The notes beneath the pieces are model-generated. The model worked only from the letters and a program-made list of their open reading frames with translations, searched no databases and was not told the DNA's origin. A program made the translations under genes and the position numbers. A DNA stretch of 64,000 bases from Pelomyxa schiedti (Eukaryota > Protista > Evosea), in the NCBI GenBank assembly GCA_020536535.1, contig JAHLWZ010000694.1:1-64000 (forward strand), written 5' to 3'. The stretch's first letter is position 1. The number at the start of each line of letters is the position of its first letter. Shown here piece by piece: positions 40,178-44,561 of the stretch.

Positions 40178-43100
40178 ATGTCGTCCCGCAGGAAAAAAGC
40201 AACGAGCCAACCACAGACCAACGCAACGCCCCCGTCCACGCCGTCCCATAATGTTGCCGTGGCACCCGGCTCGCCTTCAGTCGGTTCCACGCCAGGCGGC
40301 TCCCCCGAACATCAGCACCAGCAGCAGCAACAGCAACAGCAACATCAAAATCAAAATACAAACCAAACTCACATGCAACAACAACAGCAACCCAATTCCA
40401 CTGCCAACACAAGCAACACTCTGTTGGGGAGCAATAACAACAGCAACCAATCTCCGAATCTCATGTCGCAACCGTCACCGCAAATGCAACTGCTGCAGGG
40501 GCCTGCGCTGCAGCAACAAAACGCACCGCCGTTATCGCAGGCGATAGTTGCGTCTACGTCAATACCGATGCAATCAATTCCGACAATGTCGTTTGGTTTA
40601 AGCAGCACCCCTACTGAGGGTTCAGATTTGTGGTCGCAGTATATCGGCTATCTTGACCATGAAATTTCTAGTGCTGTGTTGGACCCATCTTCGAGGTTTG
40701 TTTCTATTTGAAAAAAAAAAAAAATTTGGTTTGTTAAATATATCCGGTAGATTATGTGACAGTATTGACTGGGAAACCGGGAAAAAGCGATCAAACTGCC
40801 GCCACAAAGTTTGCTACTTTGCACACAGCTGGGATATGTTGCAGCCACCACGGGCCAGTGTTGATGTGCATGCAAGAGAATATGGTTCTATTCCAATTTC
40901 ATTTTACTTGAAGTTGCAGAATAGAGAACCCAAAATCCGTACTACATTGGCGTACTGTTATCCAACCAAGTGAGCTAACTTCTTGTGCTTTCTCATCTCA
41001 CATAAATAGATATACTGCTCACCTCATAGAGGCAGCTAAAAAAGGAGTAGCACCCACCTATCCTCATAGTAGCGTTTGTAAAATTTGGGCTACACATAGA
41101 GGAAAGTGTCACAAATGGTCCAATTGTGTTTGGGTGCATTTACCATTCGAGCTGATCGACCAATTCCGACATAGTGCAAATTGCTTATTCGGCCGTAATT
41201 GTGTTCTTTTACCCAACTGCAAATATGTACATCCTCCAAATAGCCCTAGTGCTCCTCCAGATGTGCAGTGCTTTGGTGGTAGCGAGCTTGTAACTGTAGT
41301 AGAGACGGATTCAAACAACAATCAGACAAGAAGAGAAGTACCTATGAACACTATAATGAAGACGCTTCACACAGAACAAGCCGTTGTGCGAAAACAGGAG
41401 TTATATCTCTGCCCCAATATGTCATTTTGTGACGACTGGCATAACTGTCTTTATGTTCATATTCACCCAGATAGAAGACGTGAAATATTCGGCTTACCTA
41501 TTCCTCAACCGCTCTCATCTCCAAATGTCTGGAATGTACAAACTAAAACGCAATCTAAACACAACGCACCACCTCTTCAATCACAACCACAATCCCAAGT
41601 CCAGCTTCAATCACAAACTCAGCCTCAAGTACAATCTCAGACTCAAATGCAACTGCAGACTTCACCTCAACTTCAACCCCAGTCACAATCGATTCAGCAG
41701 TATCAACAAATTCCGCTCTTGAATAAAGGTCCTTCACAACCAACCCAACCCCAACCACAGACACAGCCCCAATCCCCAGTTCAACCCCCTCAAACCCCAC
41801 CACAAAATCCAATACAAACTCCCTCTCAAGTTCCACCTCAGATTTCTAATCAAAATCAGGCCCAGTCTCAATTACCACATATGGTTATGTTCATGCAAAC
41901 ACAGCCTCATCTAATTCCACCTCTTTCCCCTCAACATGTGAATAATCTTCACATTGACTCCCAAATGCACAATCACCAACACGTTTCACCAACCTTGCGA
42001 ATGCAACTGACACCCCCCCTTTCCTCTCTTCTACTGGCACCGCAGCTCCACATGCTTCAACAATCCGCTACTTCTTCCTCTCAACAAACTGCAGTGCCAC
42101 TCACAAATCAGCCTTCAAATCATTTACCGCTATCTCAGGCGCAAGCCCCTATATTGATGATGTCAAACCAGCTTCAAATGCAAGGAAGGGTTACTAACCA
42201 AGCAAGACCGTTGGCCCCTCCATCACAGCTCCAGCAGGCCACACAGCAAGTACAATCTCAGTCACAAGCAGGATCCCAATCACAATCCCGTTCGCCCCAA
42301 CTGCAGGCACAGCAGTCACCACGATCACAGCCACAGCAGCCACATATTCAGCTGCAGCATTACCAGCACCCCCAGCAGACTCAATCCTCTTCTAGTCCAC
42401 CACAACCATCTCCACAACTCCCTCAGCCACATTCTCCATCCCCCCCTACTCTGTTTCATCCGATTGCTCAATATCCCACGTCGCATTTAGGGAAACTTGA
42501 ATCACCACCAAACACACCAACATCGCCAAAGCGCACAGATCTTCGAAGCATGCTTAGTCTCCCTGACTGGGAGGGGGAATACAAAGATAACTTCGAAACC
42601 AAAACTGAACTTCTTGAAAGTAAGTTGCTGGTGCCTTTCGTTCCTTCATCCAACCGTTACCGAAGACAGCTTCAAGAAATGGTTAAGGTAAACTCCCACT
42701 ACACAACCAAGACGTTCCTCACCACTATTTAGAGGGGAATCTATTCATCTCTAGGTGCCGAAAATCAACGTATCCTCTGGCATCCTTCTTTTGAAATAGA
42801 GCGGGATGAAAACTTTAAGGTTTATCTTGGTATAAGAGAAGAAGATAGCACAGAGGTTGCATTGAAGGTTGATGATCTTAGAGCAGTATTTGAGAATAAT
42901 ATTTCCCTCTCAGTATTTCCCACCACAACCTGTTGATTATCCCGCTTCTGAACAAATGTTTACCGCGGAAGTGAAGGAGTTCCTGCTCCGGCACTCGCTA
43001 TCTGGTGTTCGACATCACTATTCATTTATTCAAAATACAACTGTTCTCGATGCACCTGGATTCAGAGTCAAAGTTGCTCAAAGAGCCCTTGTTCTGGAAT

Positions 43101-44561
43101 TAATGGAAGGGTCACTTATAGGTCAACCCTTCTTTACAGCCTGTACTCATATTAACTAGATGTTGTTGATATGTGGAAACAAGACAAGTTATTTGGTACA
43201 CCACTTCATTTGCAAAGTGTACGATATATTATTGGCTCTGTATTGACTACGTTACGGGAATTGTGGCAGGAACTTTTTTCCACTCCTAATTATCATTTAT
43301 GCTCGAACAACTACTGCATCCATCGCGATATTAAGTATTGACCTCTTTATATCTCTCGTTCTCACAACCTCAATTTAGGCCCGCAAATATTTTTGTTGAT
43401 GTAAACAGAAAAATTAAGCTGATAGATTTCCGGTCTTCTCGAGTTTCTATGAGTGACTTGGTACTCCTCTACTGTTATCTACCTGTGTAACATGATTGCA
43501 GAACGTTGGAAGAACATCCTCTGTCTCTCCCACGTTGACAAAAATTTATGCAAGTCCGGAATCCATTGATGCTTCGAGTGCATCAAGTGATTTATTCTCT
43601 GTTGGCTTAATATTGTATTACCTCCTCACTGGTGAGGAAGATTGGGGATCTTCTGGGGACGCAGCTACCAAAGAAGATTCCTCTGTACAGAAATTCAGTA
43701 AATTACCTGGATGTTGCATTTCCAAGTGTGTTACGGATTTTTTTTTTTTTTTTAAATACGTTAATACCCCATCTCCAGGTGGCCTCAGAAAGCATATGCC
43801 GCACATCATCTGATTTGTAACCTTGTCCAGAAGATTCCTGACGAGAGGGCGAACTATGCATCTTTGAAAAACCAGGCATTTGGTCATATACTGAGTCATC
43901 CGTTTTTTTGGTCTGATGAGCGGGTTAGTTCTTTTTTCTTCGGTTTTCCCTCCTTTGTTACCTAACCTAACGTTCTTAGTCTTTAGCCTTTCTTGTGCTA
44001 CTGGGAAATTGTAAAACGGACTTCTTTGATACTGCTGTGGCTGTAGTCCTGTATTTTTCCTTCTCTCTTCTTTTTAACTGACTTTTACAACCAAACAAGA
44101 ATCAAAGATGCCAACAGTGAAAACTGGCTTGACGCAATAAAAAATAAAGAGATTCATGCCTATGCACACAAGTGGGCAACACAATCTACAACCAAAGCAA
44201 AAGCTCGGCTATCGCATTCTTCGTCACTTCTCGTTGTCATACGGAAATTATATCAGAATTCTGCACTTTTGGAACAACCACTAGTGCATGTTTTGACATC
44301 GAATTATAACTATTTCCTAATGCAGTTTCCATCTCTTGTGGTAAGCCAGCGTTCTTTCCCTTCCTCCCTCACTCCCACCCGAAAAATCCCAGCCCAGTTC
44401 GTCCCCACTAAATCACAATTCCAACATATTCACAGGTGACCCTATGGGAACACTGCCACAAGAACAGTTTTGGTCCGCACTGCGACAATGTAGTATCTCC
44501 ACTCCTCAACATGCCCTATGCACCATCCTTAGACATTGGTGCGGAGCACGAGTGGTTCTAA
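40178..44561 (+). CDS. RNase L/IRE1-family kinase-KEN protein with four N-terminal CCCH zinc fingers and a Q/P-rich region
   Basis: Four CCCH motifs at ~40755-41465. Kinase: VYLGIREEDSTEVALK, LVLELMEG, CIHRDIK|PANIFV, KLIDFR, YASPE, SDLFSVG. KEN: HILSHPFFWSDER|SLAFLVLLGN...WL...SLLVVIRKLYQN...YFLMQFPSLV|VTLW. Confidence 0.8.

Follow-up and report, generated by a model that had tools for sequence, protein, structure and literature searches.

The window, a stretch of 64,000 nt from the Pelomyxa schiedti contig JAHLWZ010000694.1, contains a gene for a protein with CCCH-like zinc fingers, a kinase domain and a KEN-like C-terminal domain (Table 1). From the sequence, we confirm that 40178-44561 (+) is one gene. 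A 12-exon model built by hand and script yields a predicted product of 1273 aa (1273 codons plus stop; a 3822-nt frame intact over all 12 exons), and its translation matches KAH3759314.1 (P0001) letter for letter; that protein is named in GenBank merely "Protein kinase domain [Pelomyxa schiedti]". The 11 introns, 38-95 nt in length, all have GT..AG ends. Words sampled from the stretch were found at 11% in two single-cell RNA runs, and all of them were found in two runs of unknown kind. The published annotation started from Augustus, and PASA/EVM together with transcript data served to refine it (PMC8887013).

Table 1. Features of the CCCH/kinase/KEN-like gene, with positions counted in the whole window
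Feature	Position	Strand	Residues	Details and basis
Complete CDS, 12 exons	40178..44561	+		exact CDS limits; sequence-built model, identical to KAH3759314.1
Exons 1-6	40178-40695, 40751-40969, 41010-42687, 42733-42867, 42914-43121, 43160-43334	+
Exons 7-12	43379-43460, 43502-43725, 43779-43923, 43980-44050, 44100-44340, 44436-44561	+
N-terminal low-complexity region	40178..40672	+	1-165	Gln 18%, Ser 16%, Pro 11%, zero Cys
CCCH-like finger 1	40755..40826	+	175-198	C-x13-C-x4-C-x3-H; pattern scan and shuffles; first spacer atypically long
CCCH-like finger 2	41077..41139	+	269-289	C-x9-C-x5-C-x3-H
CCCH-like finger 3	41182..41232	+	304-320	C-x5-C-x5-C-x3-H
CCCH-like finger 4	41410..41460	+	380-396	C-x5-C-x5-C-x3-H
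Gln/Pro/Ser-rich linker, presumably disordered	41533..42582	+	421-770	350 aa, within exon 3; composition
Intron 3	42688..42732	+		45 nt, GTAAAC..TTTAG, phase 0
Gly-rich ATP loop position	42775..42831	+	820-838	alignment and column table
Protein kinase domain (Pfam extent)	42817..43881	+	834-1114	exons 4-9
HPFFW junction motif	43897..43911	+	1120-1124	ends kinase in IRE1 family
KEN-like domain	43912..44471	+	about 1125-1244	exons 9-12, three introns
Degenerate nuclease motif R1200-K-L-Y-Q-N1205	44242..44259	+	1200-1205	family has R-N-K-x-x-H

The exon carrying the fingers and linker is joined to the kinase exons through the intron 3 junction only. Exon 3, open over its 1678 nt, runs from finger 2 to finger 4 and on through the linker into the kinase lead-in, and retention of intron 3 would bring a stop 15 codons later. 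Downstream of this junction the first Met comes only after the beta-3 lysine, so that the kinase exons cannot form a separate complete gene. The assignment of zinc fingers and kinase to one gene, made in a first-pass annotation of this DNA, therefore stands.

Residues 165-420 contain 14 cysteines, of which the four CCCH patterns take up 12, and 20,000 shuffles of this segment gave on average 0.04 patterns and at most 2, never four (0/20,000). Fingers 2, 3 and 4 share the ending N-C-x-Y-V-H. Their spacing (C-x5-13-C-x4-5-C-x3-H over the four) and the aromatic residues before the His resemble those of ZAP, Nab2/ZC3H14 and tandem CCCH proteins, whereas no Pfam model reaches its threshold and the first spacer of finger 1 is unusually long for such RNA-binding proteins. 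Among the curated CCCH profiles of Pfam, all matches fell below cut-off: finger 2 matched Torus (E 0.013, the best) and the AtC3H23-type CCCH, finger 3 matched the ZAP-like zf-CCCH_10 (E 0.014) and the Nab2-type zf-CCCH_2 (E 0.94), and finger 1 gave zero matches. Language-model neighbours of the finger region in the Atlas were all CCCH clusters (0.81-0.87), which we take as a lead only.

The linker is 24% Gln, 17% Pro and 13% Ser. By hydropathy, the whole protein has neither a signal peptide nor a membrane helix (highest Kyte-Doolittle mean over a 19-residue window 1.26; N-terminus polar), and a Pfam scan of its full length found no PQQ-type luminal domain. The four CCCH motifs, the Q/P-rich segment of about 350 aa, the soluble character and the order of CCCH-like fingers, kinase and KEN-like domain, all read by the first-pass annotation from the letters, are borne out by these analyses.

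The kinase domain is matched by Pfam Pkinase at E 2.7e-22 (79.9 bits against a cut-off of 31.7); single exons gave two weak Pkinase matches and nothing else in Pfam. The Gly-rich loop, noted earlier as missing, is indeed absent, with W821, P823 and N832 in place of the three family glycines and an insertion of 6-7 residues, and the DFG motif reads DFR (D994-F-R996, 43425-43433). Residues kept are K850, E863, H974-R975-D976, K978, N981, D994, the P-E of APE and R1103. The phosphotransfer residues are all among those retained, and judged by them the kinase may still be active. On an IRE1-kinase profile the domain ranked last among 120 kinases. Its N-lobe segment had zero matches in the PDB at E <= 10 and was folded with low confidence in the predicted model.

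Past the kinase, the HPFFW junction keeps H1120, P1121 and W1124, the three positions that are near-invariant in 22 IRE1-family proteins, and the exon that carries it, searched alone against the PDB, found IRE1 as its first match. With phmmer, 16/16 PDB matches of the C-terminal 189 residues were IRE1 and none was RNase L (best E 0.016), the best alignment being collinear across the whole KEN; the KEN exon alone gave chance matches only. Comparison of the KEN by hhalign gave P 0.009, and a local KEN profile without the junction scored 12.8 bits, a value reached by none of 3000 shuffles (0/3000), the highest of which scored 7.0. The top three Atlas clusters combined kinase and Ribonuc_2-5A (0.98). 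The Pfam Ribonuc_2-5A profile itself reached 12.8-14.7 bits against a gathering cut-off of 23.3 (E 0.034-0.13), a sub-threshold match that is correctly placed (residues 1194-1242 on profile positions 64-116), and it gave no match for this gene on single exons or in a six-frame genome scan. Sequence, profile and model comparisons thus all point to KEN, below the Pfam threshold. Of the kinase and KEN pair proposed at first, the kinase is significant and the second member is KEN-like by phmmer, hhalign, shuffles and model; at the level of Pfam thresholds Pkinase was recovered, and zf-CCCH and Ribonuc_2-5A were not.

The nuclease site within this domain has decayed. The places of yeast Y1043, N1057 and H1061 are taken by Ser (Gln when aligned with MAFFT), K1201 and N1205, and the Arg (yeast R1056, here R1200) is the sole catalytic residue kept. 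No His lies 5-7 residues downstream of R1200, and the R-x4-6-H motif is absent. In that motif both H and R are essential, the KEN His is essential for RNase L activity, and HEPN domains without this motif probably bind RNA non-catalytically (PMC3710099). The best PDB match, 3SDJ, is an RNase-inactive Ire1 point mutant in which Asn likewise replaces the His. Across the family alignment 35 of 78 near-invariant columns are kept, and the retained residues include those that define the fold (HRD, APE, HPFFW and the F-P motif). Since the module has lost residues needed for RNA cutting, it is probably a pseudo-enzyme that binds RNA, not an antiviral nuclease of the RNase L kind; given the loss of the Tyr, Asn and His, a working RNA-cleaving sensor is not supported.

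In the predicted model, the KEN region has a pLDDT of 70-87 and matches IRE1 and RNase L past the kinase. Z scores were 21.2-22.7 against IRE1, over model residues 1-474, 18.7-19.8 against RNase L, and at most 16.8 against plain kinases, which covered residues 1-326 only. The fold match is partly circular, because the input alignment of the confident model consisted of IRE1 proteins; an alignment-free model had a pLDDT of 37.5.

Homology was searched first with single exons and then with P0001. Among 1.84 billion cluster representatives, the KEN exon found only the protein itself. The homologue search with the finger region returned nothing and that with the kinase-KEN region returned only generic kinases, mostly bacterial; the cluster-representative searches yielded no orthologue. 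No paralogue was found in the P. schiedti genome, where weak matches at C620, C821 and C1141 look like chance. In a kinase-KEN tree the terminal branch has a length of 10, ten times the family median of 1, and its placement is meaningless. The same genome encodes a canonical IRE1 elsewhere (G000:C615), with R-N-K-x-x-H intact.

The Pelomyxa protein resembles IRE1 in having the kinase directly followed by the HPFFW junction and a collinear KEN-like domain, and IRE1 is both the only PDB family matched by its C-terminal part and its best structural match. Unlike IRE1, it has no signal peptide, luminal domain or membrane helix, no nuclease site and no Gly loop, its DFG is DFR, its branch is very long, and CCCH motifs and Gln/Pro-rich regions stand at its N-terminus. 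With RNase L it shares solubility and a layout of N-terminal repeats before a kinase-like domain and KEN, and its model aligns at Z 19-20. It differs from RNase L in that a Pfam scan of the whole protein found no ankyrin repeats, that RNase L gave zero sequence matches in the PDB at E <= 10, and that its KEN lacks the catalytic His, Asn and Tyr. The first-pass annotation had aligned the segment before the kinase by eye with RNase L rather than IRE1, an alignment left without statistical support by the zero PDB matches of the N-lobe. The preference for RNase L is not supported by the C-terminal matches or by the Z scores of 21-23 against 19-20; sequence and model both favour IRE1 over RNase L.

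The non-membrane IRE-family kinases of Dictyostelium, named Irl in databases, are not known to carry CCCH fingers. Six such members, which do not appear to be membrane-bound, are described, and the likeness to this amoebozoan family, a kinase with an RNase(L)-type domain, is one of shared layout only (PMC1420674). A 2013 survey of HEPN domains lists kinase-KEN fused to CCCH, with "CCCH in some" (PMC3710099, Table 1). We found two natural proteins of this kind, P0130 and P0133, which like the Pelomyxa protein combine CCCH fingers, kinase and KEN in one chain. Both carry canonical fingers (PF00642, E 1e-10 to 1e-17) at the C-terminal end, after KEN, whereas the Pelomyxa fingers are N-terminal. 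Their KEN domains score 129-131 bits; P0133 keeps R-N-K-x-x-H, the R, N, K and H of which are kept in 22/22 family sequences compared, and P0130 has a luminal PQQ-type domain. As P0130 and P0133 form a clade of their own (96/94), the C-terminal CCCH fusion is independent of the Pelomyxa fusion. Together with the two published records, these proteins speak against an undescribed architecture. Arabidopsis IRE1C is still membrane-anchored and is not known to carry fingers. It resembles the Pelomyxa protein in being an IRE1-family member without the unfolded-protein-sensing domain (PMC6788458, PMC6883098).

We consider it somewhat better than an even bet (about 0.55) that this is a single-copy, lineage-specific P. 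schiedti gene encoding a soluble, very diverged pseudo-enzyme of the IRE1/RNase L (kinase-KEN) type. From its sequence, the protein is best read as a scaffold of IRE1-family descent that binds RNA and is not catalytic. The fingers would bind zinc and RNA, and the kinase-KEN module would no longer cut that RNA and could instead be a scaffold that binds nucleotides, associates with itself and/or binds RNA, in the way proposed for motif-less HEPN domains. With the low-complexity regions supplying multivalent contacts, RNA-binding fingers and a non-cutting scaffold would allow the protein to mark or gather RNAs and not degrade them.

The catalytic machinery of the kinase suggests another role, namely that the fingers and low-complexity regions bring an active atypical kinase to RNA-protein particles, where it phosphorylates RNP components, the KEN-like tail being structural. 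The strong Pkinase match and the retention of K850, E863, HRD, N981, D994, the APE Glu and R1103 are consistent with this, but all three ATP-loop glycines are lost, DFG has become DFR, the domain ranks last of 120 on the IRE1-kinase profile, and the N-lobe, with its low-confidence fold, has no PDB match; we regard this role as unlikely. The extremely long branch could also mean relaxed constraint, and combined with the loss of catalytic residues in both kinase and KEN and the lack of any orthologue or paralogue found in our searches it would fit a functionless, drifting IRE1-family duplicate, or an annotation that fuses a zinc-finger gene with a kinase gene. Such an outcome appears quite improbable in view of the intact 12-exon frame with its canonical short introns, the retained HRD, APE, HPFFW and F-P motifs, the uniting of fingers, linker and kinase lead-in within exon 3, the lack of a start codon ahead of the beta-3 lysine in the kinase exons, and the transcript-aided annotation.

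Three further possibilities keep RNA cutting or its control in the picture. An RNase L-like effector, in which CCCH-bound RNA dimerises the pseudokinase and activates the KEN nuclease as part of a protist antiviral or RNA-surveillance system, agrees with the layout of N-terminal ligand-binding repeats, Gly-loop-less kinase and KEN lacking a membrane anchor, and with the alignment of the model to RNase L. Against it, the His of R-x4-6-H, documented as essential (PMC3710099), is replaced by Asn, the Asn after the Arg by Lys and the catalytic Tyr by Ser; ankyrin repeats and any sequence signal favouring RNase L over IRE1 are absent; and OAS1_C had no match in the genome at E <= 1, a weak test given that control genomes gave no match either and the assembly is fragmented. 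We hold it to be very improbable. A decoy or regulator of canonical IRE1, whose dead module would pair with the cytosolic part of IRE1 and tune its RNase while the fingers bring RNAs, is suggested by the intact IRE1 in the same genome and by the dimers and oligomers through which IRE1-family modules act (PDB titles 3FBV, 3SDJ). The retention of only 35 of 78 near-invariant columns speaks against such pairing, and the score of 0.08 for a predicted complex of two copies of residues 800-1273 counts neither way; the chances of this option seem slimmer still. It is also a speculative prospect, and an improbable one, that CCCH-bound RNA oligomerises the dead modules in an RNA-triggered switch, which would regulate canonical IRE1 by pairing with it or cut RNA through a rebuilt, non-canonical site and would be a protist counterpart of RNase L evolved independently from IRE1.

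The kinase-KEN module has two textbook uses, IRE1 and RNase L. The Pelomyxa protein may represent a third, soluble and with N-terminal fingers of RNA-binding type and an inactivated nuclease site, present beside an intact IRE1; it is represented by a single, unconserved gene from one genome derived from a single cell. If expressed and RNA-binding, the protein would be an example of a HEPN/KEN nuclease turned into a non-catalytic RNA-binding or regulatory module, and would add to the non-membrane IRE-family proteins recorded from Amoebozoa. Soluble IRE-family proteins in Dictyostelium and fusions of CCCH with kinase-KEN were already known.

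P0001 (GenBank KAH3759314.1, 1273 aa; residue numbers refer to it) is a new, highly diverged soluble member of the IRE family, in which non-canonical CCCH motifs stand at the N-terminus and the KEN site is dead. Its gene lies in eukaryotic DNA with very short introns and was predicted from sequence as 12 exons on the + strand (window 40178-44561), separated by 11 introns, all GT..AG and 38-95 nt long. Eleven short introns are normal for P. schiedti, whose genes have 7.4 introns each on average, with GT-AG borders in 98% (PMC8887013). When the KEN-like exon was searched against 1.84 billion cluster representatives, P0001 was the sole match (100% identity across the exon), and a script comparison found every residue of the spliced model identical to this entry, which is titled “Protein kinase domain [Pelomyxa schiedti]” and so named as a protein kinase only. 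The gene noticed in the first-pass annotation is borne out, as is its layout of CCCH motifs, Gln/Pro-rich linker, kinase and KEN-like tail in one predicted protein.

The connection to the kinase exons depends on intron 3, which follows exon 3 (see table). Retention of this intron would lead to a stop 15 codons further on, and downstream of the splice site no Met is encountered until after the beta-3 lysine; the kinase exons are therefore unable to make a complete separate gene. The published annotation was produced with Augustus and refined by PASA/EVM and transcript data (PMC8887013). Two single-cell RNA runs contain 11% of the words sampled.

Features of the kinase-KEN-like gene, its protein P0001 and the flanking open frames
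Feature	Position	Strand	Content
CCCH pattern 1	residues 175-198		pattern scan
CCCH pattern 2	residues 269-289		pattern scan
CCCH pattern 3	residues 304-320		pattern scan
CCCH pattern 4	residues 380-396		pattern scan
Exon 3	window 41010-42687	+	single 1678-nt open frame: fingers 2-4, entire linker, ~35 residues leading into kinase
Intron 3	window 42688-42732	+	45 nt, canonical, phase 0; joins exon 3 to kinase exons
Kinase, kept			K850, E863, H974-R975-D976, K978, N981, D994, P-E of APE, D1035, G1040, R1103
Kinase, lost			all three Gly-loop glycines (now W821, P823, N832); DFG glycine (now R996)
KEN, kept			H1120, P1121, W1124, F1132, W1161, L1195, L1196, R1200, F1228, P1229
KEN, lost			family D-L-L-R-x-x-R-N-K-x-x-H, now S-L-L-V-V-I-R-K-L-Y-Q-N
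5' open frame	window 39441-39965	-	174 codons
3' open frame	window 44672-45673	+	333 codons

All four CCCH motifs claimed earlier are present. The 14 cysteines of residues 165-420 include 12 that belong to these patterns, fingers 2-4 share the ending N-C-x-[YW]-V-H, and none of 20,000 shuffles of this region contained four patterns (mean 0.04, maximum 2). In the suggested check for zf-CCCH, no curated Pfam profile scored above threshold in the finger region, the best being Torus (E 0.013), with further sub-threshold matches to zf-CCCH_10 (ZAP-like; E 0.014), AtC3H23-type (E 0.31) and Nab2-type (E 0.94) profiles. In language-model space, residues 165-420 have none but CCCH clusters as neighbours (0.81-0.87), which we treat as only a lead. 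The top two neighbours of this region (window 40755-41460) are giant-virus (Nucleocytoviricota) CCCH clusters at 0.87, below a trustworthy level. The Q/P-rich segment is likewise as described, with 24% Gln, 17% Pro and 13% Ser across residues 421-770. Consistent with the claimed lack of a signal peptide or TM helix, a 19-residue hydropathy scan found no membrane segment (highest mean 1.26), and the N-terminus is polar.

The kinase domain gave a significant match to Pfam Pkinase (E 2.7e-22, residues 834-1114). The tail after it, claimed to be a KEN domain, fell short in the Pfam check, scoring 12.8-14.7 bits against Ribonuc_2-5A (cut-off 23.3); it is nonetheless very probably a KEN homologue, as indicated by several kinds of evidence that are in part independent. 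The kinase ends in HPFFW, the IRE1-family junction motif, and the exon carrying it has IRE1 as its first PDB match when searched alone. At E <= 10, residues 1085-1273 match 16 PDB sequences, every one of them IRE1, and the top alignment (E 0.016) is collinear across the entire yeast Ire1 KEN domain. A profile built from the kinase-KEN regions of 22 IRE1-family members (alignment A1) matches residues 1129-1273 at the LLRxxRNK...YF..RFP.L block (P 0.009). A local profile restricted to KEN, from which the junction motif was left out, reaches 12.8 bits, and 3000 shuffles gave no more than 7.0. With the full-family profile, residues 911-1242 align as one piece at 67 bits, compared with 36 bits when only the kinase columns are used, and the three nearest Atlas clusters of residues 800-1273 are kinase + Ribonuc_2-5A families (0.98).

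Structure prediction agrees, with evidence that is partly circular because A2, the alignment behind the AlphaFold model of residues 800-1273, consists of IRE1 proteins: pLDDT is 70-87 in the KEN-like part (mean of the model 60.6, N-lobe poor), the top 50 Foldseek matches are all IRE1 kinase-RNase structures, and VIA-align gives Z 21.2-22.7 for IRE1, 18.7-19.8 for RNase L and at most 16.8 for plain kinases, which cover model residues 1-326 only. An alignment-free model did not fold with confidence (pLDDT 37.5).

Wherever signal exists, in the PDB as in structure comparison, IRE1 comes first, ahead of RNase L, which points to an IRE1 rather than the RNase L affinity proposed earlier. The N-lobe segment aligned by eye with RNase L had no PDB match, a Pfam scan of P0001 found no ankyrin repeats, and the suggested search for OAS genes gave no OAS1_C match in the P. 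schiedti genome, a weak test. In a tree of IRE1-family kinase-KEN regions, the position of P0001 is unreadable because its end branch is 10 changes per site long, the median being 1.

Compared with 22 family members, P0001 keeps 25 of 57 near-invariant kinase columns and 10 of 21 in the KEN part. Its kinase domain is so diverged that, of 120 kinases scored with an IRE1-kinase profile, it comes last. The Gly-rich loop is missing, as had been claimed. In the nuclease site K1201 replaces the Asn following the Arg and N1205 the essential His, while the catalytic Tyr position holds Ser in a phmmer alignment and Gln in a MAFFT alignment. No His occurs 5-7 residues past R1200, which means that P0001 lacks the HEPN R-x4-6-H motif. 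The best PDB match, 3SDJ, is titled “RNase-inactive point mutant” of Ire1, and its chain has Asn at the N1205 position, the H1061N change. R-x4-6-H is conserved in ~95% of KEN domains; by mutagenesis, RNase activity needs its His and Arg, with a contribution from the polar residue following the Arg, and HEPN domains without the motif have been proposed as non-catalytic RNA binders (PMC3710099).

The same genome encodes a canonical IRE1 (G000:C615, about 32200-36050; locus L007, about 3200-7055) with a luminal part, a single membrane helix, an unaltered Gly-rich loop and the motifs HRDLKPGN and HPFFW. Its KEN scores 49.9 and 40.1 bits, over the Pfam cut-off, with R-N-K-x-x-H intact, and it was the only gene found in a six-frame Ribonuc_2-5A scan of the genome. 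The gene under study is single-copy, and no orthologue was detectable in the sequence collections searched. Weak matches (E 0.05-4) to the KEN profile, KEN-like exon or finger region at G000:C620:5155-5259, G000:C821:71719-71871 and G000:C1141:1541-1708 are most likely due to chance; the C620 and C1141 sites contain no kinase, KEN or CCCH gene.

The architecture had been thought possibly undescribed, but it has precedents. Soluble IRE-family proteins are already known in Amoebozoa: the Dictyostelium kinome includes seven IRE-family members, each with an RNase(L) domain, of which IreA alone is membrane-bound (PMC1420674). A survey of HEPN domains lists CCCH fingers in some kinase-KEN proteins (PMC3710099). 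A sensor-less IRE1 has also been described in Arabidopsis (IRE1C). Two uncultured-eukaryote proteins join kinase, KEN and CCCH naturally, P0130 (locus L010 166-2823) with a luminal PQQ-type domain and one canonical zf-CCCH, and P0133 (locus L009 33-1964) with two, the latter starting 33 nt from the end of a contig, where it may be truncated. Their fusion is independent of that in P0001, because the two are sisters in the tree (96/94), their KEN scores lie far over the Pfam cut-off and their fingers follow the KEN, whereas the CCCH motifs of P0001 are N-terminal.

The layout, the missing membrane anchor, the lost nuclease motif and ATP-loop glycines, and the intact IRE1 elsewhere in the genome are direct observations. 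We suggest, with a probability of roughly 0.55, that P0001 is a pseudo-enzyme acting as an RNA scaffold. Its fingers would bind zinc and RNA, and the kinase-KEN module, retaining its fold while losing RNase chemistry, may serve as a scaffold that binds nucleotides, self-associates or binds RNA, with the Gln/Pro-rich regions contributing multivalent contacts. The conserved kinase residues would also suit an atypical kinase, still active and aimed at RNPs, a doubtful reading given the replaced loop and DFG glycines.

The RNA-activated nuclease of the first-pass annotation is improbable with N1205, K1201 and no R-x4-6-H. A gene that is drifting or mis-joined, a reading we hold unlikely though ahead of the nuclease, would fit the eroded sites; the open frame, intact across 12 exons with 11 canonical introns, speaks against it. 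Least probable is a decoy role through pairing with the canonical IRE1, a candidate partner encoded in the genome.

Two open frames flank the gene. The one just 3' is extremely Asp/Glu-rich, reads poly-Ser on the opposite strand, and may represent either a repeat or an acidic protein of low complexity. The 5' frame, which has a basic tail and an extended run of Ser, is probably an exon of a neighbouring gene.
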